NCBI RefSeq assembly: GCF_964194025.1
Contig: NC_134470.1
Span: 12,896,001 to 12,960,000 of the forward strand
From: Convolutriloba macropyga
Lineage: Eukaryota
Direction: 5' to 3'
DNA length: 64,000 nucleotides
Positions 3,404 to 44,380 of this stretch are shown piece by piece. The notes under the pieces are model-generated. The model saw only the letters and a program-made list of their open reading frames with translations. It was not told the DNA's origin and made no database searches. Position 1 is the stretch's first letter. Every line of letters begins with the position of its first letter. Made by a program: the position numbers and the translations under genes.

Positions 3404-4813
3404 TTAGCACCAAGTGAAGAAAGGCCGTTTCTCCTGATACGTTTCTCGGAACTCACTTCCGTCTCGTTCTGCTACATTGTGACTATCTTGGCACACTGTT
3501 TGCTTCTCCACAATTCGAAGCGGCAACTCCACCAAATCAGAAGGCGACATCCTTTTACTGAGAGCCTCACATAAGTTCATAATTTGACCTCTTAAAATTG
3601 ACATTTGCTTCTCGAACAAAGTTTTGCTGAAACCTTTATCGATTGAGAACAACAATTCAAGCTCAGCTATTAACGACTCCACGTTGTTCAGATCTCGAAT
3701 CATTGGAAGGAATGTCTGGATAGTTTCCTCAGAGAATGGGGTTTCAGCGTATGGCTGGAGCCAAGCCCACTGGTATGGATAAGCTCTCCAGGTATCCGGA
3801 TGTTTATAAGGAAAAGCAAGACCATTATCGATTGCAGCTACAGATATCTTGGGAGTACTGACTACGTTCCACTTAACCTTTTGATCACCACCTTCGTCTA
3901 TATCCTCATGCTCTTTCGTAGCGGTTGTTGAAATATAATCCGCTGGGGTTGTTTGCGGACTAGATTCCAGATCAACCTTGACCAACCAATTGTCATTTCC
4001 ACGATCCGTATTGCGTACGATGTAATCCAAAATAACCAACTTTTCGAACTTTAACTGGAACTCATGCATAGATTTGTTCGGTAACGTTTCGTACGAAAAA
4101 CGCTTTAAAATATCATCAGCGCTAGAATAGTCTTTCATAAAAAGTTGGAAAGATCCAACTTTTAGAGGTAGACCTAGACGCTTAAAACGGCGACCAATTA
4201 CGGGCGTTGTTGCCATTATTCCTCGTTTTGCCGTGCACTTAGCTTTTGTTATCTTGGAGTAAAAGAACGTTTCACTTGCTAACCAGACTATTCGCGTTTT
4301 AGGAACAATATTTAAACCTAGCCACTCGTCTACGATACTTGCTCCAGCTTCAGATAAATATCCCTGATTTTTTAAAAGGCAGTTACGACCAAAACAACAG
4401 GGACAAAACACACGTTGGCACCACTTTCCATATTTGGGATTTAAAGCACTATAAGGCTCCTCGCTTTTCGGTTTGAAAACAGCAATATTTTCTTGGCGAG
4501 TATTTTGAACAAAATAACTGCCACTTGAACCTTGTTTTATACGAATAGGATGAATTCCAATTGCAATTGCAAGCTCGGCTTCTCTAACTACATCTTCAAA
4601 CGCCGGATCATTTGGAAAACTATTTAAGTTGAGCATATCAGGTGGTTCTGGTTCTTCGCTTTCGTCGATTGTAGCAATGATTTCATGGGACCTCGAGTTT
4701 TCATAGTTTTCTGTATCGTCCACCTCTACTGTAAACATTTGAGGAGCCTGTTCGTCTGCACTTATCACATCTACCGTCTCTTCTGTCGACAAAAAGCCTA
4801 AATTTTCTGCCAT
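3404..4813 (-). CDS. PI4K2: Phosphatidylinositol 4-kinase type II, intronless CDS, 469 aa
   Basis: QGSSGSYF, FKPKSEEPY, palmitoylation-type CPCCFGR, RNTDRGNDNWL, AAIDNGLAFP, WRAYPYQWAWL, C-terminal PFFTWC. Confidence 0.96.
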   Translation of the reverse strand: MAENLGFLSTEETVDVISADEQAPQMFTVEVDDTENYENSRSHEIIATIDESEEPEPPDMLNLNSFPNDPAFEDVVREAELAIAIGIHPIRIKQGSSGSYFVQNTRQENIAVFKPKSEEPYSALNPKYGKWCQRVFCPCCFGRNCLLKNQGYLSEAGASIVDEWLGLNIVPKTRIVWLASETFFYSKITKAKCTAKRGIMATTPVIGRRFKRLGLPLKVGSFQLFMKDYSSADDILKRFSYETLPNKSMHEFQLKFEKLVILDYIVRNTDRGNDNWLVKVDLESSPQTTPADYISTTATKEHEDIDEGGDQKVKWNVVSTPKISVAAIDNGLAFPYKHPDTWRAYPYQWAWLQPYAETPFSEETIQTFLPMIRDLNNVESLIAELELLFSIDKGFSKTLFEKQMSILRGQIMNLCEALSKRMSPSDLVELPLRIVEKQTVCQDSHNVAERDGSEFRETYQEKRPFFTWC

Positions 4814-5240: not shown

Positions 5241-5997
5241 TCAAGCGAAAAAATCGTATAAAAAAAAGACCAACAGGACTAATATAATTGCTAAACTTCG
5301 TTTGAGAGCAATTAATAACGAAAGATTTAGGATTAATAATCCAATGATTCATAGAAAACCCCGCAATTCAAGTAAATAATCAATTTATATCAGCTAGGCA
5401 AGATTGAGTTCAACGCTCTGCAGTTGTTGCAGCCACACAAAATCAGAAAAGTGCATGGCTCTGATTCGTTGTACGGGATTTTGAATTGTTTAAAGTTGCT
5501 GTATTCAGCTTTTGTGATGAATGTCAAATAGAATATCTGATCTGAAGGAATCAGTATTGCGCACCGAACAAAAAATTAAGAACATCCTTCCCCAAGATTG
5601 GGTGAACATTGGGCTTCCCAGCTCTTTGTATTTCCAAAATTTATCAATAAAATGAAGATATGAGGACAAATGAAGAATAGTAGTAGTAGTAGCGAAGTCT
5701 TTAGGGATATACCATGGGTTTCCACCCTTTATATCATTAGTGAGTAAGCTGGGAATGTTGGTTACAGTTCGTGCATTGGCAGAGTATCCTCCAGGTACAT
5801 AGATTGGCTTCGTTGAACTTTTCGAATTACCAAAATTGCTGTGTTATTCGTGCTTTTCTGTTTTCTTTCGTTGTTAAGTCGATATGTTTACTCAGAATGT
5901 TGTGCAGTGTTCCGTTTCGTGTCCAGAAGTTATCGTCGGTCCTTTTGAGTCTGTAAAAGAAACCGATTTGTCAAATTAAAATTACTTCCAATACTTA

Positions 5998-6040
5998 AAA
6001 CAAACGTTTTCGAACTTTACGTTCATCGTCAGGTTAAAAC
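5998..6040 (-). ncRNA. Putative minimal type I hammerhead ribozyme in the Penelope 3' region
   Basis: Minus strand reads CTGACGA-T-GAAC gtaaa GTTC-GAAA-ACGTT: core boxes, 4-bp stem II, palindromic stem III. Confidence 0.65.
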
Positions 6041-6386
6041 TGTTTTACAAATTGTTAAAAGATAAAATGAATATGTATTTACATTTGTCTGAGATGACAA
6101 TTAAAACAATTCTAGGAAACATTCTAAAAAATTCAATCGAAAATTTTTCCTTATATACAATATTTAGCCTATTTACAACACATATTTACATCTGTTATCA
6201 ATTTACTTAAAAACATTCCTATTCCGGATTTTTCGATTTTGTCCATGTTCTTGTATTTTTAGGGTTATTCCGAATTTGCCCTAACCATAAGTATCCCTCT
6301 TGTGGAGGTTTTGCAAATTTCGTTTTGTCATGCACAAAATGTTTTTTGCCCTATGCATTCTCATTTAGTCAAAAATATGATTTGAA

Positions 6387-7147
6387 CTAATATTTTAGCG
6401 TGAGTTCCCTCCCCCTATATTCGTCGCGTGTGTTTAGTGCCGGCTTCAGCTTGCTGATATATATAGCTTCGATGATCATTAGTTTTTCTACTGACCGACA
6501 GGCGTCCAGAATTCTCCATTCAATGTCATTCGTGGCGCCACGACATTCAACTAGATGTTGACCCACCTGTGAATCCTTCTTTTGATGTTCTGTTATCCTT
6601 GTGGTAACATGCCGGCTTGTTTGCCCAACATAGATGGATCCGCATCCATTACATTTAATTTCATATACCACGTGGGATTTCAGATCTCTATCAAAGGATG
6701 ATTTCAAGGTGGGGAGGCACGATCTTAATTTTCGCGTTGTAAAAACTACTTGCAATTCGCATAGTTTCTTCAATTTGCTTGCGAAGTTTTGAGTGAGGTT
6801 GCCTCTGTATTGTAGAAAAATAGTTGGCTTATCATTAGATTTAGTCTTGCTTTTTTGATGCTCTTTTGGTGTTGTTCTTAATTGGTCTTTACCGCAACTT
6901 ATTATTTTTTCTAGAGTCTGATTCACAATTTTTGAAGACCATTCCTCTGGATATTGATTTTTGGTCCAGCAAGATTTGTTCTTTTCAAGAGCCTGATCGA
7001 AGGCCAACCAATTAGAGGTTGCATTAAAAACCCTGTGAACCGTCCCTTGAATCACATTTTTCTTATGTTGAAGCGGTGCACAGCTGCGAAATTTCAGTAT
7101 TATTCCAGTGTCAGTTGGTTTTTGATACCAATGACAGGTGATACCAA
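6387..7147 (-). CDS. Penelope RT thumb/linker + GIY-YIG endonuclease (5' truncated, open frame)
   Basis: WYQKPTDTG, VVYEIKCNGCGSIYVGQTSRHVTTRITEH, IIEAIYISKLKPALN. Confidence 0.85.
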
Positions 7148-7170
7148 TGACAGGTGATACCAATGACAGG
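7123..7170. repeat. 3 x 16-bp tandem repeat (tgataccaatgacagg) at the Penelope 5' truncation junction
   Basis: Read directly from the sequence. Confidence 0.9.
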
Positions 7171-9859
7171 TGAGTCTGGTTTTGGGAATGTTGAAGCTGG
7201 AGTTGGAGCCTTGTCTGGTTCGTTCGTTGGTATTACGTGATTGTATTCTGATGTTTTCATGTCATACTTGTGGTCAGTGATGGCGCAGAACAGTAGGAGA
7301 CTGTGGAGTTCGAAGTACATTGAGAGTGGCAGTAAGTTGAGTTCTTTGAGTCTTTCTTTATAGGGAATTGTGTTGTTTAGAATCCACTGTGTTGCACTTT
7401 TCTGCATTCTTTCGATGTTTGACAAGTCTGTTTTGATGGGGTACCAGAACTCACATGCGTACGATATGACGGGTACCACATATCCTGTGTATGCGTTTAG
7501 TTTGGCTTCAGTCGTTGACTTAAAAAAAGTTACGCTTGAGGAAACACTATGATTTCAGGGCTTTAGTTCGACGCAGATTACAGTTTTCTTTCCAGGAGAG
7601 GTCGTTCGAGATTAGGACACCAAGGTCTTTTTGAACTTTAACAGGTTTGACAGCGACTTCGTTCGTTTTGGCAACTGACTGTTTTTTGAAGTGTACCAGA
7701 CTACATTTATCATCATGGAGATTCATTTTGTTTGCGACACACCAGTTATGTAAACTTATTAGGTCACTTACTAGGAGTTCATGAGATGTGCTTAACAGAT
7801 TGTAGTCATCGGCATATCCGAAGTATTCACTTTCACTTGCAACAGTTGGGAGGTCATTTATGTAGATTAAAAAGAGTAGAGGACCCAGTAGGGACCCTTG
7901 TGGGACCCCGCTAGTGACATCACGGAATTCAGATCTTGGGTTGTTTATTTTCACACATTGTTTTCTATTGTCTAAATAATTGGCAATTAGTTTAAGGGCT
8001 GTTCCACCTATTCCCATTTTGTGGATTTTCAAAAGCAGGAGATTGTGAGGAACCTTGTCGAAGGCTTTTTCGAAGTCTAAGTAGAAGACCGTTAGTTCAT
8101 CAATTGCCGACGAATCGTTGAGCAGGTATACTTTTTCGAGGAAGCAGATAAGTTGTATAATGGCTGAGCGACCGTCTCTAAATTCAAATTGAGAGTCGTG
8201 AAGTTTTTGCCTTACTACTGGGTATAACCAGTCAGCGATGACTTTTTCTAGGACTTTTGACGGGCAACAGAGGCAGTTAATGGGTCTATATTTGGTTACG
8301 TCGCTTTTATCACCGTCTTTGTAGATTGGAGTTATTTCGCTTTCTTTCCAGTATTGTGGGTATACACCTTTGTTGAAGCAGGTTTGAAAGATGACAGTTA
8401 ATGATTTAGCCAGTCTGGTTGCAAGTTGTTTTAGGGTCTCGTTTCCTATTCGATCCGCTCTTTTTGCCTTTTTTGATTTAAGAGAACTAAGTATTTCCGT
8501 GACTTGTTTTTCGCAGCAAGTTATTTTGTTGAATGTATTTGGCCCGAAGTCAACGTTTGTATTGTTTGTTTTTTAATTAAAAACACTTTGGAAGTATTGG
8601 TTAAATAAATTTGCCTTTCCTTCATCATTTTTTGCTACTTTGTTTTGTAAATGCATTTCATGTGGGTACGGTGGCGCTTTTTTAATGGATCTCAGATAGG
8701 CTTGGATCTTACTGAATCCCCTTGTTCTGAAAATCTCGTTTTCGTAGTCGGCTTGGTCGTTACAAGGTTCGATTTCAATTTTGCTTTCAAGATCAAGAAT
8801 ATTTTGCAGGTTTAGGGGTTGGGCTTTTCTGGCTTCTTTGCGTTTGAGTGTGTTAAGTTGGTTGATCAGGTGGGAGGTAGGTTTCAAGATCCATGGAGGG
8901 AGGTAAGATTGTTGGCTAGTAATTCTTGGTACGTTTTCGGTAAACAGTTTGTTGAACCATAGGTACCATTGATTGGTGATTTCGTCTACATTGCTGTAAC
9001 AGTAAGGTTCAAAGGGATTATCGACAACTGTTTGATTAAAATTCTCCCAGTTAGTCCGAGAGGTTGCATATTTGACATTTTTATGGTGTTTCTCCGTTGC
9101 ATTATTGAAGGTTAACAGGGATGAGAATGCTGGGTGGTCTGGGCACTTTTTTAAATTGACTGAATAGTTAAGTAAGTGTGGTGTCAATTGTTGAATTAAG
9201 CCAATACTCAGGTTCATCTATTAGGAAGACGTCTAACTGCGGTTTGCTGCCAAGTATGCATTGGAAGTCAAATTTTTGTTCACAGTTGAGATTCGCTAGT
9301 TGATCAGTGACAGTGTTTTCATATTCCTTTATGGACTGCATTAACCCCCAAAATATATGCACAAAATTATTATCTCCAGTTATTATAGAGCTTGAGACTT
9401 TCAATTGTTTACGTTTGGTTGTGAGACTTGAAAGGAATTGCGCGCATTTTTCAGGTGGCCATCTGTAGGGACTGTTTTTTGGAGGGTTATAGATACAGCT
9501 GATCAACAATTTTTGTGTTTTGGTTCTGTCAGTTAGTAAAACAGTTATCGCGTCTTCAAATGTATGGTAAAGTGTCAGTTGTTTAGCCTTGATGTCTCTC
9601 CGTACCGCAATGAGTACTCCTCTGTGTTTAGAGACATTTCTGTTGAACTTCTGTCATTTTTGAATATTTGGAAGTTATTGAGGAAAAGAGACTCGTTCGG
9701 GACAGATTTTGTTAGACAAGTCTCACTGAGGCATAAGACATCGTAGTTTTGGGGTAAAATTGCATTTGCAAGAGTGAAACGTCTTTGCAGGTCGAGGACG
9801 CTGTGTACGTTGAAAGTGAGTAGAGTAATTTGTTCGGTTCTGTTTTCGTTGGTGTTTAG

Positions 9860-10793
9860 TCACCGTCCCGTATCCAGGGCGGCCTCATCCCAGGTGTTGC
9901 TTTGATCATCGTAGTGTAGTAGTTTCAGGTTTTGGACCATGACCTTGTTTCTTGGTATTGGTATTCCCGATTCGATGTATTCTCGTCTTTTTTTAAGTAG
10001 ATCGTTTTCCAACAGTTGTTCTTCTTTTGATAGTTCTCTGCTAGGGCACACTTTTTTATCATAGTTCCGCAATTTGCCAAGAGATAGTAAGAGCAGTTTT
10101 CTGTTCCTGTCATTACTGAGTTTGACTATGATTGTTCTGTTGTATGTTTCAATTCGCCTACAATTTTCGATATCAGAAACAACATTTAAGACTTTTAGTA
10201 TGTTTTCAATCTCAACTGTATCATGTTAAGCACGTTTTCTAGCATTGGTGTCTTTTAGCTCGGGTATTCCACGTACATGTACGCCGCTGGAGTGATCGTT
10301 TATGGGAGGTTCGGTTTTGGTTTGACTTTTTTGGTCACAATGTCTCCTAGGTCGTTGAGCTTACTTTTAACAGCGCTCTTAAAGGATGTTATCTCATTTT
10401 TCAGTTGATTACCGACAGTTTCTTTAAACAAAAATTTTCATTTCCTCCTGATTTTCGTTGATTTTGTCGATTTTGTTTTGGCTGATGATAGCGTCCAGGA
10501 CGACGTCCCGTTTGTTGGTTTTTACACAGTTGTTGCATATAAAAGTTGCGTAAAAGTATATTCAAATTTATCTCCTGGAGAGTGTTGATGACGGTGCCAG
10601 ATAGCTGAGTACATTGGGTGGTCATATGCATAATGTTTTCGCATGATACGCACCGAAAGAGTGTATCTTTTTTAGCAATGCCAGCCTTGCATGTATTACA
10701 GTTGATTGTAAGGCCACTTGCAATTTTCGATTTTAAACTTACTTCTTTGTTTGTTATCGTTTTCGATCGACTTTTTGTTTGAGGCGTTTCCGT
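9860..10793 (-). pseudogene. LINE-A ORF1 with N-terminal PHD finger, disrupted
   Basis: CNTC...CVSC..MH...C...CNNC (C4HC3) across frameshifts; C-terminus RELSKEEQLLENDLLKKRREYI. Confidence 0.75.
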
Positions 10794-11001
10794 ATTACTT
10801 CGCTACTACTCGAGAGTTGTTAGGATCGTAGCTGTTTCACTAGTTATTTCTCGCTAGGAGAGATTGTAGTGAAGCAGCGCTTGCTTGCTGTTATCCTTTG
10901 TTTATCGCGAGGAGAGACAGCGGTATAACCACAAACAGTTAAGTAGAAACTAACTATTGTTACCTGGGTGGTTCTTGCTGGGAGAGCCGGAGGAAACGGA
11001 G

Positions 11002-11597
11002 TTAGTAGTTGCAGTTGCAGTTCTTGAATGGGCACTCGAAGTTGTCTAGGTGTCCTTCCTCGTTGTACTTGTTCGAGTAATTCTTGAACAACACTCGTTT
11101 CTTCAGGATCGCTTTCACTCCGCTGATCCCGGAGTTGCTAATGTGCACGTCGTCGTCGCCGATGTGTATCTCACTGAAAATTTCTTCTGAAACACCACGA
11201 TATTTCCAGTTTCTGCTTGTCTTACTTTTGTTGTCCAATAGTTTATTAGTTTACGAAGAACGTTCACGTTAGCTACCACGGTGGGATATACCAAGGATGA
11301 AAACTTTTTTGGCTAGCTTGCACTGCTGTTCGCCCAGAAAGTCTAACTCGTCCACTACCTGTTGCTTGGACAGTGAAGATGGGAGGGTACCGTTGTATAA
11401 GTCGTTGCCGCCAATAAAAACAACAAATATGTTGAACTTATCTTTGATGAGAAGAATTGTTGAGCGTGGGCAATGTGAGCTCCAGGAATGGACAAGATGT
11501 TGAAGTTGGGGAACTCGATGTTTCGGGCTTGTGAATCTGCGAGGAGCAGGTTCCTCGAAGAAGAAGTCCTTAGAGTGTGGAATCGTCTGTTGGACAT
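11002..11597 (-). pseudogene. LINE-A ORF0, SGNH/GDSL esterase-like, disrupted
   Basis: Blocks LLLADSQ (I), SIPGA (II), VFIGGND (III, after a frameshift), DDDVH (V); own stop at 11002. Confidence 0.75.
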
Positions 11598-11972
11598 CAA
11601 AGCATCAATCTCACCCGTCAAAGCTAGGAACGAAGGGACTTAGAACTCGTTCATGTTGAAAAGGATTCTTGTTCCTAGCTCAAAAAGTCTGAAATTGAAT
11701 GATTTGACGAAGGGAAAAGGCAATCTATTTAATAAGTTTATAATGAACAAATGAATAATGAACAAAAGAGTATAAAGGCTACGCCATCACAATACTGCAC
11801 ACACAAACCAGTCTGAAAATCATCTGCGCCACTCACGCTGTTCTGTCACATGCAGTAAAAAGCATACTAAATAAAAAAACAGGGAAATCGGATCTTATTG
11901 GTCAGCTCAAAGGATGCATTTTATTTTTAACCCCCCCCCCCGCAGCACGCGCAATATTTTGACATAACCGTG

Positions 11973-12339
11973 CTGTTGTTGCTGTGACTTTTCGGGATCA
12001 AGCCGAGGGGATTGCTCCCATAGAAGTTTTGGTCTTGGTTCCACTATTTTCTGCAATTGGAGCAATCATAGAAAACGGTTCATGTACACACTACTCTTCC
12101 GTTGAAGTTCAACATCAGACGGTCCCACATAAATGACAGAATACATCTTTTGAGTCCCAAAGGCTAGGAAGAGTCTATCTCTTCAGGCAGATTGTTGGCA
12201 ACTTTGGCAGTTCGAAAGTAAAAGTTCTCTCTGAATTTCTCGGTTCTCAGTTGTGGAATTTTGAATAATCTGCTTTTAACTCTACAATATTGGTGTTCAT
12301 AGGTTTCTATCAATGGAAGTGTGTTTTTTTATCATGGTA
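11973..12339 (-). mobile_element. 5'-truncated 3' fragment of LINE family B
   Basis: Reverse complement matches ~21050-21420, including gcaatcccctcggcttgat.ccgaaaagtca and a (caa)-like tail. Confidence 0.85.
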
Positions 12340-12797
12340 ATTGGCAGGTGATTTGTAATTGTGGGTGCAAAACGCACTGGAGGGCGGGTGGGTGTGCACA
12401 CCGAAAAGATCCAGGAATTCCGATAAAGAAAATTGAATAATCCTTAAAAAAGAACTTTAGTTCCCACTCCTACTTTTTGAGTGGAACATTCTGCCAGCGG
12501 ATCCTTTTATGTTAACACGCTTGTTGCCGATCGAAATCTATTGCACGCAGAGAAACAACTGGTATACAAACTTAAACAAACTGTTGAATTTCCCAGTTCA
12601 AAAGAAAAAGACTTGGGAAGTCGATTTTACATGATGATGCAAGTAATTGAAAGTTGCATAGAATATTGCCTAGAAAAGTTATCATATTATTTAATGATAA
12701 CCAAGTTAAACGTTTTTTTATGCCCATGCAGTCAAACCAACTGAAATTGGAGACACAGACTGAACTTACCATATCACTTCAAGTTGACCAACATCTT

Positions 12798-15700
12798 TAC
12801 AAAAACAAAATAGAGCTTTTTAGCGGAAGAAGACAAATTTATCGGCGTTCAGCGATACTTCAAGTCCATAACGAAGTCAAAAACAATTCCCTCCAAAAAT
12901 TTTTGGGATCACCAAAAAAGAACAAAATCTGCCACACTTCATTTGTTTAACGAAAATTTCAAGTCATGTTCACGCAGGAAATGTGGTAAGATCGGCCATT
13001 CTGTTGTGCCAAGTTTGACCAGCAAAATGAGGTCCAATTTTTTTGTATAACGACTATCACAAAATGACAGCAAAAGAACCACACAAACTGTCCACAGAGA
13101 ACCACAAAAAATCACAAAAGTATCTAAACTTCACAAAATTCTTCTGAAACAAATTGTCTCAGCCCTGAAGACATCATTTAAAAAGTTTAAACAACAGAAA
13201 TTTTAATTTTTGATTCAACAAAACATTAAAAAGAGCTCTAAAAACGATACAATTTACAAAATGATTAAATAGTGTTTTTCCGATAGACTGTTCTGGGATA
13301 GCCGTGGTTATCCACTAAATGTTTATCCTTGGTGCAAGTTCATTGTCGCATGCGATTCGATCTTTACCCTGGTTTATCCGAAAAAGACTAAATCGTCACA
13401 TCCTTGCCATACACAGTTTGTGCTTCAATCAGAAAAAGAACAACAAACGGAAAACTGTTCATACTCCGGAGATCTCTGCGTCGTCGTAAGGACATTATTA
13501 TCTGGCACGATACGCTCAATAAATCGATGACTCAACATAGAAGTAACAACTTCACTCAGGTGTCGCCAGAAAGATTGAGGAAGATCTTATTGTCGTTTGG
13601 CAATCAGGTACAAGGGGTCGTCCATTGCACCCGTGAAGGTGCTCCAGATATTTGGGATCATATCAAAACCTTGAGAACCCAAGGTTTCCAAGTAGCAAAC
13701 ATTGTTCGTGGAATTCTGCCGAAGCAAAAATCTAACGATCCTGAAATCCTGATAGAGTATATTCAGTTGCATCAGAAACCTCTGTAGGAACTTCGAACGT
13801 TAGCAGCTGTGAAGAGAGTCAACTGTGAATTGAATCGCTTTGCCCAGAAAAAGAAAAGACTATCCAAAACTCGTCGCGAAAAATCACTTCGCGACCAAAA
13901 AATCACTAACAGCAAATAACTCTTGGTTCTCAGTTTATCATTTGATATAACTTGAAAACTCATCTTGTGCTACTTCGGACCGGTTTGAGTACAAAAACAA
14001 AGTAGAACTTTTTAGAGGAAGAAGACAATTTTATCGGCGTTCAGCGATACTTCAAGTCCATAACGAAGTCAAAGACAATTCCTTCCAAAAATTTTTGGGA
14101 TCACCAAAACAGAACCAAATCTGCCACAGTACACTTGCTTAACAAAAATTTCAAGCCATGTTCACGCAGGAAATGTGGTAAGATCGGCCATTCTGTTGTG
14201 CCAAATTTGACCAACAAAATGAGGTCCAATTTTTTTTTATAACGACTATCACAAAATGACAACAAAAGAACCACAAAAACTGTCCACAAAGAACCACAAA
14301 AGAACCACAAAAGTATCTAAACTTCACAAAATTCTTCTGAAACAAATTGTCTAAGCCCTGAAGATATCATTTAAAAAATTTAAACAACAGAAATTTTATT
14401 TTTTGATTCACCAAAACATTAAAAAGAGCTCTAAAAATGGTGCTAATTTACAAAAATTATACTATTTACAAAATGATTTAATAGTGTTTTTCAGATAGAC
14501 TGTTTTGGTATAGCCGTGGTTATCCCCTAAATGTTTATCCTTGGTGCTAGTTCATTGTCGCATGCGATTTGATCTTTACCCTGGTTTATCGAAAAAGACT
14601 AAATCGTCACATCCTTGCCATACACAGTTTGTGCTTCAATCAGAAAAAGAACAACAAACGGAAAACTGTTCATACTCCGGAGATCTCTGCGTCGTCGTAA
14701 GGACATTATTATCTGGCACGATACGCTCAATAAATCGATGACTCAACATAGAAGTAACAACTTCACTCAGGTGTCGCCAGAAAGATTGAGGAAGATCTTA
14801 TTGTCGTTTGGCAATCAGGTACAAGGGGTCGTCCATTGCACCCGTGAAGGTGCTCCAGATATTTGGGATCATATCAAAACCTTGAGAACCCAAGGTTTCC
14901 AAGTAGCAAACATTGTTCGTGGAATTCTGCCGAAGCAAAAATCTAACGATCCTGAAATCCTGATAGAGTATATTCAGTTGCATCAGAAACCTCTGTAGGA
15001 ACTTCGAACGTTAGCAGCTGTGAAGAGAGTCAACTGTGAATTGAATCGCTTTGCCCAGAAAAAGAAAAGACTATCCAAAACTCGTCGCGAAAAATCACTT
15101 CGCGACCAAAAAATCACTAACAGCAAATAACTCTTGGTTCTCAGTTTATCATTTGATATAACTTGAAAACTCATCTTGTGCTACTTCGGACCGGTTTGAG
15201 TACAAAAACAAAGTAGAACTTTTTAGAGGAAGAAGACAATTTTATCGGCGTTCAGCGATACTTCAAGTCCATAACGAAGTCAAAGACAATTCCTTCCAAA
15301 AATTTTTGGGATCACCAAAACAGAACCAAATCTGCCACAGTACACTTGCTTAACAAAAATTTCAAGCCATGTTCACGCAGGAAATGTGGTAAGATCGGCC
15401 ATTCTGTTGTGCCAAATTTGACCAACAAAATGAGGTCCAATTTTTTTTTATAACGACTATCACAAAATGACAACAAAAGAACCACAAAAACTGTCCACAA
15501 AGAACCACAAAAGAACCACAAAAGTATCTAAACTTCACAAAATTCTTCTGAAACAAATTGTCTAAGCCCTGAAGATATCATTTAAAAAATTTAAACAACA
15601 GAAATTTTATTTTTTGATTCACCAAAACATTAAAAAGAGCTCTAAAAATGGTGCTAATTTACAAAAATTATACTATTTACAAAATGATTTAATAGTGTTT

Positions 15701-17619
15701 TTCAGATAGACTGTTTTGGTATAGCCGTGGTTATCCCCTAAATGTTTATCCTTGGTGCTAGTTCATTGTCGCATGCGATTTGATCTTTACCCTGGTTTAT
15801 CGAAAAAGACTAAATCGTCACATCCTTGCCATACACAGTTTGTGCTTCAATCAGAAAAAGAACAACAAACGGAAAACTGTTCATACTCCGGAGATCTCTG
15901 CGTCGTCGTAAGGACATTATTATCTGGCACGATACGCTCAATAAATCGATGACTCAACATAGAAGTAACAACTTCACTCAGGTGTCGCCAGAAAGATTGA
16001 GGAAGATCTTATTGTCGTTTGGCAATCAGGTACAAGGGGTCGTCCATTGCACCCGTGAAGGTGCTCCAGATATTTGGGATCATATCAAAACCTTGAGAAC
16101 CCAAGGTTTCCAAGTAGCAAACATTGTTCGTGGAATTCTGCCGAAGCAAAAATCTAACGATCCTGAAATCCTGATAGAGTATATTCAGTTGCATCAGAAA
16201 CCTCTGTAGGAACTTCGAACGTTAGCAGCTGTGAAGAGAGTCAACTGTGAATTGAATCGCTTTGCCCAGAAAAAGAAAAGACTATCCAAAACTCGTCGCG
16301 AAAAATCACTTCGCGACCAAAAAATCACTAACAGCAAATAACTCTTGGTTCTCAGTTTATCATTTGATATAACTTGAAAACTCATCTTGTGCTACTTCGG
16401 ACCGGTTTGAGTACAAAAACAAAGTAGAACTTTTCAGAGGAAGAAGACAATTTTATCGGCGTTCAGCGATACTTCAAGTCCATAACGAAGTCAAAGACAA
16501 TTCCTTCCAAAAATTTTTGGGATCACCAAAACAGAACCAAATCTGCCACAGTACACTTGCTTAACAAAAATTTCAAGCCATGTTCACGCAGGAAATGTGG
16601 TAAGATCGGCCATTCTGTTGTGCCAAATTTGACCAACAAAATGAGGTCCAATTTTTTTTTATAACGACTATCACAAAATGACAACAAAAGAACCACAAAA
16701 ACTGTCCACAAAGAACCACAAAAGAACCACAAAAGTATCTAAACTTCACAAAATTCTTCTGAAACAAATTGTCTAAGCCCTGAAGATATCATTTAAAAAA
16801 TTTAAACAACAGAAATTTTATTTTTTGATTCACCAAAACATTAAAAAGAGCTCTAAAAATGGTGCTAATTTACAAAAATTATACTATTTACAAAATGATT
16901 TAATAGTGTTTTTCAGATAGACTGTTTTGGTATAGCCGTGGTTATCCCCTAAATGTTTATCCTTGGTGCTAGTTCATTGTCGCATGCGATTTGATCTTTA
17001 CCCTGGTTTATCGAAAAAGACTAAATCGTCACATCCTTGCCATACACAGTTTGTGCTTCAATCAGAAAAAGAACAACAAACGGAAAACTGTTCATACTCC
17101 GGAGATCTCTGCGTCGTCGTAAGGACATTATTATCTGGCACGATACGCTCAATAAATCGATGACTCAACATAGAAGTAACAACTTCACTCAGGTGTCGCC
17201 AGAAAGATTGAGGAGTATCTTATTGTCGTTTGGCAACCAGGTACAAGGGGTCGTCCAATGCACCCGTGAAGGTGCTCCAGATATTGGGGATCATATTAAA
17301 ACCTTGAGAACCCAAGTTTTCCAAGTAGCAAACATTGTTCGTGGAATTCTGCCGAAGAAAAATCTAACGATCCTGAATTCCTGACAGAGTATCTTCAGTT
17401 GCATCAGAAACCTCTGTACGAACCTCGAACGTTAGCAGCTGTGAAGAGAGTCAACTGTGAATTGAATCGCTTTGCCCAGAAAAAGAAAAGAGTATCTAAA
17501 GCTCTTCGGGAAAAATCATTTCGCGACCAAAAAACCACTAAGAGCAAATAACTCTTGGTTCTCAGTTTATCATTTGATATAGCTTGAAAACTCATCTTGT
17601 GCTACTTTGATTTGAGTAC
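12798..17619 (+). repeat. Tandem array of 4 x ~1211 bp units (flank + LINE-B 5' end/ORF0)
   Basis: The same ORF starts at 13404, 14615, 15826 and 17037 (period 1211); junctions gagtac|aaaaacaaa. Confidence 0.95.
13319..13919 (+). pseudogene. LINE-B ORF0, divergent SGNH-like (first array copy; others offset by ~1211)
   Basis: MFILGASSL..LAIHSL..(frameshift)..IIIWHDTLN..IQLHQ; order and spacing parallel the SGNH blocks. Confidence 0.5.
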
Positions 17620-17672
17620 CTGGGCCTTAGTATCACGTGCTGAATTTATGGGCTGAAGTATTGTGGGGCAAA

Positions 17673-18556
17673 ATGTCTCGCAACTCCGAGGGGAAATGCA
17701 AAACATGTAAAAGTCAAGTCAAAATAGGAGAAGCTGTATACAACTGTATCTCTTGTGGATTGAAGATGCACATGGAATGTGCTGGTTTGGAAGAGGACGC
17801 CATAAAGGTGCTCTCAAGTCTGCTTAGTAATCTTTTACTCCTGTGTAACGAATGCGTGAATAAAGGGAAGAAAGATCAAGTCATCCAGAAATCCACAAAA
17901 GAAAACGTGGAAGGAAAAAATGACGACAAGCTCAACGAAAGTCTGAAAAAGATGGAGAATTTCTAATCAAACGGATCGATCAGAAAATCGAAGCTGCTCT
18001 GGCAGGCAGCGATGCGAAGACTGAGAAATCCATGGAGAAAATCCTTGAAGAGAAGATAGTTAATTAAGTTCTGAATGTGCAAAAAACGTCTGACGAACAG
18101 AAGGAAGTACATCAAAATATCTTGAAAACCTTCAGAATTCAAGGAATTCCAGAAGACCTAGAAAAAACAAAAGATGAGATCTTGATTTCACTAAATGAGA
18201 ACAAAAAAGATATATTTGATGCAATTGAAATCAACACGACGGTTGAAAACGTGAGAAGATTTGGAAGGTTTGATAAAGAGCGCTCGAAGCCAAGGAGCGT
18301 TCTAGTAACTGTTCCCAACTGTTGGGACACACGGAGGATTTTAACTAAAGCTAGAGAAAAAAGGAAACTACTTTCTGACCGCGGTTTCTTTGTACTTCCA
18401 TCACTAACTAAGGCAGAATCCGAAAAAGAGAATATGTGTCTTATGAAGATATCTGAGATGATAGAGAACAGAACACCTGCAAACCAAATCAAAAATAGAA
18501 ACTTTGAACTGCTTCACAACGGTACAAAAGTCGATTTGGAAGAACCATCCGATTGA
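17673..18556 (+). pseudogene. LINE-B ORF1 (PHD finger, coiled coil, RRM-like C-terminal half), disrupted
   Basis: CKTC..CISC..MHMEC..CNEC; FRIQGIPE, RRFGRFDKERSKPRSVLV. Confidence 0.85.
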
Positions 18557-21345
18557 CTAGAAAATTTGAATCTGATGTTAGTAAATGCTCGTAGTCTTTT
18601 GAATTTTGATAGATGAATTAAGTTTGCAAATGCTGTGATGACCTGTAGATACACCATTGTCATCGTTACGGAAACATGGTGGAATAAAGACGTGGAAGAC
18701 TCTGAAATTACGCTTCCTGTGTATATCTTACTCAATTGTGAAAGAGCTGTCAACAAACACAGAGGTGTTTTGATAGCTATCCAGAGCATCATCACTGCAA
18801 AACGAATCAGTGACGATCTCCCGGTTGGATGTATTCTCACTATCGTTGACATACAACTGAAGAAACATCTTGTATGTGTCATCTACGATCCGCCACTGGG
18901 TAGCGCCTACAGATACATTTTAGCTGATTTTGAACAGGTACTCAGAGTTATTGAAGAATTCAAGCAATACGCATTTTTGATTTTCGGAGACTTCAACCTA
19001 ACAAAGGTCAACTGGAGCCTAAATCACAGTGCCGATGAGTACGAGCAATCGGTGATTGAAATTTTGAAAGACATAACTTTCACCAAATAGTGGACTTTAG
19101 TACTTGTGGAAAGAACACAATAGATATTGTGTTTGAACGGAAAGTGGAAAACACGACTGCCAAGATTGATCTTGTCTTCAGACACATGCTTGACGTTTCA
19201 GATCACGAACCGATATTAATATCGCTTAAAGAACACAAAGAAGAACGCAAAACCCATGTCTCCATTTATTTCAGCTTTGCAACGCCAATTGCGATGCGAT
19301 GCTGGAAGAAATGACCTTGTTCCCTTTCGAGGCTACATGCTTCACTAACATCGATCGCATGGTTGAAGAGTTTTATGATTACATTAAATCCTTAATAGAG
19401 AAACATAGTCCCAAACGTACTCAACATAGACAGCTTGTGCCTCCTTGGTTTTCTAAGGAGACCTCTCATACTATGAAGATGCTGAGCACTGCTCGGCGAG
19501 CCGAACGCAAGAAACCAAACAGCTTAGTGCTATCGGAAAAAGTTTTGAAACTAGCAAAATATGTTACTGGAACTTGCAGAAGAATTTAGGTGTCAGTATC
19601 AACAGAAACTTGTGACCACTCGTGATACGACAGTGATCTTCAAGCACTTAAAGAGTCTTAGAAAAACAGTAACTCAACCCAGAATACTTTCTCTAGAGGA
19701 AGAGACTGCCGATTCCACTCAACAGAAAGTAGGCCTGCTAAATAGGTATTTTCAGTCTGTATTTTCTGAGAAGACTGAAAACACGGTAGCCGATGACCTT
19801 CCGCACCCAAACCTAATAAGAGCAATCTTAACAAACCTTGATGTCTCAAAAACTCGAGGTCCAGATAACATTCCCTCCTGTTTCTTGAAGCAACTGGCTG
19901 AACCGCTCAGTTTATTCTTGAGCGCAGTCTTTAGGAACATCAAAAGATGAGGAAAAATCTCGAACTGTTGGAAAATTGGTGCTGAGTCGCCCATCCATAA
20001 TAAAGGCTGCAGAGCAAGTGTCAAAAATCACAGACCAGTGACTTTGCTGTATATAGTTTCGAAAGTACTCAAACGATGTATGTATGATCCGATCAAAAAG
20101 CAATTCTTGGATCATTTAATAACCAGTCAACATGGATTTGTGAAAAAACGATCCGTTGTGTCGAACATGCTCTATTTCTAGAACGACGTTCAAATTGCGT
20201 TGGCAGGAAACCCAAATTCGGTTTTTTCCTCATACACCGACTTCTCAAAAGCATTCGATAGGTCCCGCATCCTGAATTTTTGATCAAAGTAAGTTCAATT
20301 GGAGTGGGCGGGTTTGTACATAGTCTTCTCAAGGACTATTTATGTAATCCTACACAGTTCGTAAGATGTGATGGTGTCAGGTCGGACCTTCTACAAGTAT
20401 TAATTGGTGTTCCGCAGGGGTCCATTTTTGGCCCCTTACTCTTCTGCATCTTCACAAATGATTTGCCAACTTCCTTGATATTCAGCACCCCATATCTCTA
20501 TGCGGATGACGCAAAGTTCTTGTTTATTGACAAAAGTAACCAAGAAATTCAAAAAGAAGTTTACAGAAACTCACTTTGGGTATCCAGGAACAGAATGTCA
20601 CTTGCAACTGAAAAATGTTGTTATATAGCATTTAAGGGACAGTCCATCAGCCTTACGATGAATAACACTACAATAGAGCAATCCACAAAGGTGACTGACT
20701 GGGGAGTGCAGCTTACAGGTACCCTTAAAGCGTCAAAGCACCTCGAGTCCAGGCTTGCGAAAGCTAATCGAACTTTTGGTTTTCTGAAGAGAAACTTATC
20801 GAAGAATGTGGAAACGAGAGTGAAAAACTGTGCTTACAAATCCCTTTTTCTACTTTTGATTACTTTTGCTTCAGGCAGTTGTCACCCATCGCGTGGAAGT
20901 ATGAGACTAATGGAATGCTTTCAAAAACGTGCGTTGAAATGGATAACGGGCTATAGGAATGCGTCGTACTTCAAAAACATGGTATTCCTAAGATTACTTC
21001 CGATTCCTATGTTTTTGCAACTCAATGATTTACTTCTATTGTCTAGACTGTACCATGATAAAGAAAACATACTTTCGTTGATACAAACCTATGAACACCA
21101 ATATGGTAGAGTTAAAAGCAGATTATTCAAAATTCCAAAACCGAGAACCGAGAATTTCAAAGAGAACTTTTACTTTCGAACTGCCAAAACTGCCAACAAT
21201 CTGCCTGAAGAGATAGACTTTTGGGTGTCAAAAGACGTATTCTGTCATTCATGTGGGACCGTCTGATGTTGAACTTCAACGAAAGAGTAGTGTGTACATG
21301 GACCATTTTCTGAGATTGCTCCGATTGCAGAAAATGGTGGAATCA
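18557..21345 (+). pseudogene. LINE-B ORF2 (APE + RT), multiple stops and frameshifts
   Basis: Fragments 18635-19090, 19090-19314, 19299-19589, 19561-19950, 20280-21266; ends VVCTWTIF*DCSDC. Confidence 0.9.
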
Positions 21346-44180: not shown

Positions 44181-44380
44181 NNNNNNNNNNNNNNNNNNNN
44201 NNNNNNNNNNNNNNNNNNNNNNNNNNNNNNNNNNNNNNNNNNNNNNNNNNNNNNNNNNNNNNNNNNNNNNNNNNNNNNNNNNNNNNNNNNNNNNNNNNNN
44301 NNNNNNNNNNNNNNNNNNNNNNNNNNNNNNNNNNNNNNNNNNNNNNNNNNNNNNNNNNNNNNNNNNNNNNNNNNNNNNNN
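44181..44380. other. Assembly gap (200 N)
   Basis: N run. Confidence 1.

Follow-up and report, generated by a model that had tools for sequence, protein, structure and literature searches.

How ribosomes reach the second open reading frame (ORF2) of long interspersed nuclear elements (LINEs), which encodes the endonuclease and the reverse transcriptase (RT), is a long-standing open point, and L1 and SART1 give different answers to it. Two elements, here called LINE-A and LINE-B, raise the question again in a 64,000-nucleotide stretch of Convolutriloba macropyga DNA (NC_134470.1, positions 12,896,001 to 12,960,000; hereafter the window, meaning the whole of this stretch). In both, ORF1 ends at a TGA that is followed directly by CTA, and ORF2 continues in the same frame. 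The same junction recurs throughout the clade of LINEs to which they belong, which offers a testable third answer, that ORF1 and ORF2 are probably joined by programmed readthrough of UGA.

The minus-strand letters at the LINE-A junction are ...GAT ACG GGA CGG TGA CTA AAC ACC AAC GAA..., with the stop at 9862-9860, and past the TGA the same frame reads LNTNENRTEQITLLTFNVHS, with no ATG up to there. On the plus strand LINE-B reads CCA TCC GAT TGA CTA GAA AAT TTG AAT CTG ATG TTA GTA AAT GCT CGT AGT, with its stop at 18554-18556. A preliminary description of the window had pointed out both junctions and their in-frame continuations, and both are present as it gave them, including the ATG-free course of LINE-A; an in-frame ATG at 18575-18577, codon +7 past the LINE-B stop, had gone unmentioned. 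Both copies in the window are defunct, being interrupted by numerous stops and frameshifts. TGACTA makes up 0.29% (0.0029) of all strings of a stop triplet plus 3 nt in the window, where TGA accounts for 38% of stop triplets.

The junction cannot be put down to chance in two decayed copies. DNA searches of the 1.18-Gb assembly yield about 30 copies per family, 87-93% identical to the window copy, and family states were read from these tabulated copies and not from a consensus sequence. TGACTA is present in 26 of the 29 genomic copies of LINE-B and in 20 of the 36 hits of LINE-A, most of the other LINE-A hits being one tandem array counted several times. A tandem array of an internal LINE fragment (G000:C8:21979378-21985412; L017, L024, L025, L027) holds four LINE-A junction segments at ~1.3 kb spacing, all of them TGA ATA. 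The ORF1 ending DTGR that had been described for LINE-A is correct for the window copy but not for the family, in which the codon before the stop is TGG (GGATGG in 33 of 36 hits) and the CGG of the window is private to that copy.

A protein search of the genome with the C-terminal 159 amino acids of LINE-B ORF1 returned more than 1,100 candidates, many of them only 32-48% identical, from which 63 divergent junctions were fetched and clustered into families. In nearly every readable copy of these clusters TGA CTA leads in frame into L-G-F-x-N-I-L-x-x-N-x-R-S-L, where the endonuclease begins, and the ORF1 C-termini in front of it are unrelated between clusters (DNHEGW, DVQNAH, VETKSN, EGEPDA, GPETSS, EKTESS, PNQHSA, AGCTST and others). 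Seventeen families were tabulated in all, ten from this genome with usable copies and seven from other assemblies or runs. The latter were reached via public protein sets containing RT and ORF1 relatives, and their contigs represent other samples: no match to the L132 flanks turns up in this genome, the L128 flanks align to nothing but repeats (65-81%), and L133 reaches 67% at best. Three more clusters with one readable copy each stand outside the 17 (two with TGA CTA, one with TGA ATA); L061, a 70% relative of LINE-B, was left out because it is one decayed copy and has an indel at the junction site, and L127, a more distant LINE with 31% ORF2 identity, has no readable ORF1 junction.

Among the 17 families, between which ORF2 identity falls to ~35%, ORF1 ends in TGA in every case, so that the family-level state at this site is a stop and not a sense codon. 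The next codon is CTA in 16 families and CTC in the remaining one (L128), and the base after it is G in 12. The endonuclease domain lies in the ORF1 frame past the stop in 17 of 17, with the catalytic Asn 10 to 17 codons downstream. The junction letters are unchanged in contigs from runs of three organisms, an agreement of DNA that says nothing about RNA; searches of the public runs for this organism returned none recorded as RNA. The TGA-CTA junction is thus a clade-wide feature; the earlier statement that two families share TGACTA and the frame holds for both of them and falls short as a measure of extent. The L128 contig also has in-frame ATGs at +4 and +6, and its CTC may be a copy-level mutation.

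The hexamer is conserved at the nucleotide level, beyond what the protein requires. The invariant Leu of N-x-R-S-L, 14 codons downstream, is written TTA, CTA, CTT, CTG or CTC in different families, the Arg of the same motif AGA, AGG, CGA or CGT, and Asn and Ser use both of their codons. At the junction, the Leu codon at +1 is always CTA or CTC and the stop is never TAA or TAG, while in L133 and L131, the two elements whose codons were counted, CTA accounts for 15-23% of Leu codons. For the first 15 families tabulated, treated as independent, the probability of at least 14 CTA in 15 is ~2e-9 and that of 15 TGA in 15 is ~1e-6. Since the flanking codons vary freely and a neighboring invariant Leu is found in five codons, it is the TGA-CTA letters themselves that are held, and with nearby synonymous sites saturated, common descent by itself could not have preserved six bases in 16 of 17 lineages. 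UGA-CUA(G) had been recognized in the preliminary description as a known readthrough context, and it is documented as such (PMC4132726).

Coding constraint resumes directly after the stop. Gly at +2 is kept in eight families through all four of its codons (GGA in three, GGT in three, GGC and GGG in one each), which indicates protein-level constraint there and translation that begins at or before +2. The Pfam domain Exo_endo_phos begins at residue 8 after the stop. A profile built from four sequences of the N-terminal 240 amino acids hits structures of the human L1 endonuclease (2v0r, 1vyb and others; E 4e-6), a match that required the profile, as phmmer with one sequence of the apurinic/apyrimidinic endonuclease (APE) domain against PDB returned nothing. 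Position 3 of the profile aligns with residue 7 of the L1 endonuclease, and the Asn at +10 and the Glu of a C-x-E-T motif correspond to its N14 and E43, which are catalytic residues. By this alignment UGA-CUA sits at the place of the initiator Met of L1 ORF2.

A conserved AUG for ORF2 is not found. Between the stop and the catalytic Asn, ATG is absent from 11 of the 17 families (A, F1, F2, F3, F5, F7, F8, F11, X134, X136 and X138), and in the others it stands in frame at a varying position, +4, +7 or +9. The ORF2 frame of F3 has no Met before residue 65, which lies past both catalytic residues. An ATG within ATGGTGA in families A and F2 was considered as an ORF2 start and rejected, being in another frame and opening only a short ORF. 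These positions bear on the possibility that ORF2 starts at a downstream in-frame AUG, reached by leaky scanning, an internal ribosome entry site or a spliced RNA, with TGA-CTA as an inherited ordinary stop. The six families B, F4, X128, X132, X133 and X139, with an ATG 1 to 7 codons before the catalytic Asn, suit such a start, but the eleven families that have none do not, and neither the retention of six bases among saturated sites nor the protein-level constraint on Gly +2 agrees with it; we consider it very improbable as a general account. Reading the junction itself as a splice acceptor (CTAG/G) was rejected, as AG is missing from five of the 17 families, a polypyrimidine tract is absent, and the sequences upstream are not related to one another.

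Initiation may dispense with AUG, and ribosomes terminating at UGA could reinitiate at or next to CUA, yielding separate ORF1 and ORF2 proteins (ORF1p and ORF2p) in a manner akin to that proposed for human L1 ORF2. This would account for the missing conserved AUG, and a context in which termination is slow might keep the ribosome at the junction. CUA, however, differs in two of its three bases from AUG and does not count among near-cognate starts, and reinitiation leaves the frame of ORF2 relative to ORF1 free, yet all 17 families are in frame. Known coupling sites overlap stop and AUG, as in the UAAUG of SART1, an arrangement absent here, and the conserved letters are those shown to promote readthrough (PMC4132726). 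We regard reinitiation as unlikely, if clearly less so than a downstream AUG.

Two elements with open frames illustrate the arrangement as a whole. L133, a 4.4-kb contig from a public run, has an ORF1 of 301 amino acids, TGA CTA, and an ORF2 of 947 amino acids in one frame with no other stop; L131, of family F3 in this genome, has an ORF1 of 302 amino acids, TGA CTA GGT, and then 530 plus 412 codons of the same frame split by one TAA. ORF2 ends in TGA TCT in L133 and in TAA GAC in L131, neither being the junction motif. The ~1,250 codons of L133 contain no other in-frame TGA and its ORF2 ends in TGA, which implies that UGA is a normal stop here and argues against UGA being generally read as sense in the host. 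That is one of several ways in which UGA could be recoded other than by readthrough, the others being selenocysteine insertion and adenosine-to-inosine editing to UGG, as in hepatitis delta virus. Fused ORF1-endonuclease proteins are indeed called in public gene sets (P0123, P0142, P0150, P0155 and P0156), and in these the frame is continuous through Trp or Arg; they are single, decayed copies in which the TGA has mutated to TGG or to CGA/AGA, and annotation pipelines see a continuous frame only in such copies. An Rfam scan of the full L133 and L131 elements gave no match at E<=1, with the selenocysteine insertion sequence (SECIS) and known recoding elements included. Folding of the 110 nt past the stop in ten families gave z scores of -1.3 to +1.8 and no common stem, leaving no local hairpin as an editing substrate, and RNA structure was for the same reason dismissed as a component of the signal. 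A conserved CUA is expected under none of these routes, and we give this group of explanations the least credence of all.

Programmed readthrough of UGA, producing an ORF1-ORF2 fusion, is in our judgment the likely explanation of the junction; what favors it is that the conserved letters are those known to promote readthrough, that the frame never varies, that coding constraint sets in at +2 and that ORF2 lacks a start codon. Translation of the full-length RNA would begin at the AUG of ORF1, and most ribosomes would stop at UGA and release ORF1p, a protein of ~300 amino acids that combines a zinc finger with a coiled region and an RRM-like portion. The UGA, with CUA and mostly CUAG behind it, would act as a weak terminator, where a near-cognate tRNA lets a minority of ribosomes decode UGA; these would take the CUA as Leu and go on into the endonuclease and RT, yielding a fusion of ~1,250 amino acids. 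A high ratio of ORF1p to ORF2p would be fixed in this way, as for Gag and Gag-Pol in retroviruses, and the enzyme would be tied to the ORF1p particle on its own RNA. The readthrough itself, the inserted residue and the fusion as the active form are what we infer from these sequences. Somewhat less firmly, we think it probable that this deeply diverged animal LINE clade makes its endonuclease and RT only as such a fusion, by programmed UGA-CUA(G) readthrough.

The expectation that the motif acts in this way comes from mammalian work, in which UGA-CUAG drives readthrough in four efficient cases, with up to 31% in UGA-CUAG genes (Loughran et al. 2014, PMC4132726). Readthrough at UGA-CUA by itself is 1.5%, no structure is required, replacement of UGA by UAA or UAG lowers readthrough 6- and 3-fold respectively, and alphaviruses also have UGA-CUA(G) (PMC4132726). 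By analogy with these values, the rate in the LINEs would be of the order of 1-5% (PMC4132726).

Several observations weigh against readthrough or temper it. L128 has CTC in place of CTA, in the single copy seen; the six families in which an in-frame ATG precedes the catalytic Asn by 1 to 7 codons could still initiate ORF2 at AUG; and with no stimulatory structure found past the stop, the readthrough rate may be low. The efficiency of the motif was measured only in mammalian cells, not in the host lineage, and because the families are related, the simple probabilities given above overstate their independence, although synonymous sites are saturated between families.

Coordinates of the window copies, of the adjoining repeats and of the junctions from other assemblies or runs are collected in Table 1.

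Table 1. Features of LINE-A and LINE-B in the window, and junctions of the seven families from other assemblies or runs.
Feature	Position	Strand	Sequence or remarks
LINE-A junction hexamer	9857..9862	minus	TGA CTA; stop 9862-9860, Leu codon 9859-9857; majority state among genomic copies
LINE-A ORF1 remnant	9863..10703	minus	decayed, several stops; tblastn with intact L133 and L131 ORF1s, frame translation
LINE-A ORF1, zinc-finger region	~10551-10703	minus	
LINE-A ORF1, RRM-like and C-terminal part	~9902-10318	minus	
LINE-A ORF2 remnant (APE then RT)	5764..9859	minus	start in frame with ORF1; frameshifts and stops later
LINE-A (CTA)n tail	near 5676-5692	minus	
Four tandem units, ~1211 bp each	13437..17333	plus	directly 5' of LINE-B ORF1; ORF list, tblastn; not part of the junction signal
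LINE-B ORF1 remnant (PHD/C1-like zinc finger, then RRM-like C-terminal part)	17694..18553	plus	frameshift near 17960; tblastn with intact ORF1s
LINE-B junction hexamer, then G	18554..18559	plus	TGA CTA; 26/29 genomic copies
LINE-B ORF2 remnant (APE then RT)	18557..21340	plus	begins at CTA itself; Exo_endo_phos and RVT_1 (Pfam)
L132 junction			TGA CTA GGC
L133 junction			TGA CTA TGC
L134 junction			TGA CTA GGA
L136/L137 junction			TGA CTA GGG
L138 junction			TGA CTA CAT
L139 junction			TGA CTA GAA
L128 junction	L128:3800-3830 (ENA ERZ25878734)		TGA CTC ACA

Pfam searches of the window find RVT_1 in both LINE-A and LINE-B and Exo_endo_phos in LINE-B. The RVT_1 match in LINE-A ORF2 (E 1.5e-34, window 7550-8572) agrees with tblastn using L133 ORF2, and residues 2-941 of L133 ORF2 align by tblastn to the LINE-B remnant, which has a premature TGA at 18614-18616 and several frameshifts. 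The LINE-B ORF1 segment 17637-17966 scores 27 bits for C1_2 (cut-off 26) and 19.6 bits for PHD (cut-off 24). Each of the ~1211-bp units contains a 127-amino-acid ORF homologous to an ORF that lies upstream of ORF1 in F3 (L129 740-1120) and in L133 (2-496), and neither an esterase nor any other Pfam domain was found in the ORFs upstream of ORF1. Between LINE-A and the tandem units, at 12035-12268 on the minus strand, lies a separate truncated copy matching the C-terminal 78 amino acids of a LINE ORF2. Elsewhere in the window, an unbroken 469-amino-acid ORF at 3404-4813 (minus) encodes a type II phosphatidylinositol 4-kinase, whose best named homologue is from the acoel Symsagittifera roscoffensis (68% identity; other animals ~50-55%), a single-gene indication that the host is probably an acoel, and positions 44181-44380 are 200 N, an assembly gap or mask.

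These elements are APE-type LINEs, with an N-terminal APE and a central RT (Exo_endo_phos, Exo_endo_phos_2 and RVT_1, with the profile match to the L1 endonuclease). The best named match of the RT, at 37% identity, is a Grus japonensis protein annotated as 'mitochondrial enolase superfamily member 1', which on our own reading, not that of the annotation, is CR1-derived. This bird match, an ORF1 zinc finger that scores at or near the Pfam cut-offs (C1_2 at 18.5 bits in F3, against a cut-off of 26) and a (CAA)n tail suggest that the clade is CR1-like. With CR1-like LINEs of the Jockey/CR1 superfamily that have a PHD- or esterase-type ORF1 it shares an ORF2 with APE and RT, a putative PHD/C1-like finger and a microsatellite 3' tail; it differs from the esterase-bearing ones in that Pfam detects no esterase in the upstream ORF. 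The 3' ends of L133 (4380-4416) and L131 (minus strand) share the terminal motif GTAAATCC-N-(CAA)n although their ORF2s are only 53% identical, and this motif is possibly a recognition site for the RT.

If the clade does use readthrough, it would be the first case of recoding-based, Gag-Pol-like expression in animal non-LTR (long terminal repeat) retrotransposons. The stoichiometry of ORF1p and ORF2p would then be regulated as in retroviruses, fusion of ORF2 to ORF1 in the active enzyme would provide a physical basis for cis-preference, and the UGA-CUAG signal of vertebrate genes and alphaviruses would work in an early-branching invertebrate lineage, widening its taxonomic range. There is a consequence for annotation as well, since gene callers break such elements up, or report a fused ORF only where the copy is mutated.

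In the full-text literature searched, no readthrough is described for animal LINEs, nor for a LINE with the UGA-CUA motif, and it is missing from the reviews of LINE translation, which name reinitiation, UAAUG coupling and 2A peptides. In-frame amber stops are reportedly present in the ATLN LINEs of Arabidopsis. The sole LINE precedent found is a remark on group 3 of the Paramecium germline LINEs, for which readthrough was raised as a possibility in a single aside (Guerin et al. 2017, PMC5405496); these belong to a ciliate-specific clade in a host with a variant code, and the remark is one sentence without a motif, a conservation analysis or a test (PMC5405496). The known modes of LINE ORF2 translation are unconventional termination-reinitiation in human L1, UAAUG coupling in SART1, and 2A peptides (PMC5972666, PMC3894237, PMC3708506). 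Like the elements described here, these systems make little ORF2p from a bicistronic RNA and need no AUG proper to ORF2; they differ in having a spacer or an out-of-frame overlap and in producing separate proteins, whereas here the two ORFs are contiguous and in frame behind a readthrough motif. Coupling of the L1/SART1 type, with a start that overlaps or shortly follows the ORF1 stop and a free frame, does not describe the 17 families, of which 11 have no ATG before the catalytic Asn and all are in frame.

The logic of the proposed arrangement is that of retroviral Gag-Pol of the murine leukemia virus (MuLV) type, in which an abundant nucleic-acid-binding protein and a rare RT fusion are made in a ratio set by a leaky stop. 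The means differ: MuLV has UAG, a downstream pseudoknot and a protease that releases Pol, whereas the LINEs have UGA, no structure that we could find and no protease domain (Pfam), and the gammaretrovirus signal of UAG with a pseudoknot ~8 nt downstream is not present at their junctions. The closer parallel is with the vertebrate UGA-CUAG genes (OPRL1, OPRK1, AQP4, MAPK10 and MDH1) and alphavirus nsP3/nsP4, which have the same signal, conserved at the nucleotide level, with no need of RNA structure (PMC4132726). The carrier here is a non-LTR retrotransposon of an invertebrate, known from sequence alone, and the extension is an enzyme of ~945 amino acids in place of a short tail. The UGA-CUA-GGC of X132 is that of OPRL1, Ross River virus and Getah virus (PMC4132726), and in the alphaviruses, as in these LINEs, it is the polymerase that lies behind the leaky stop.

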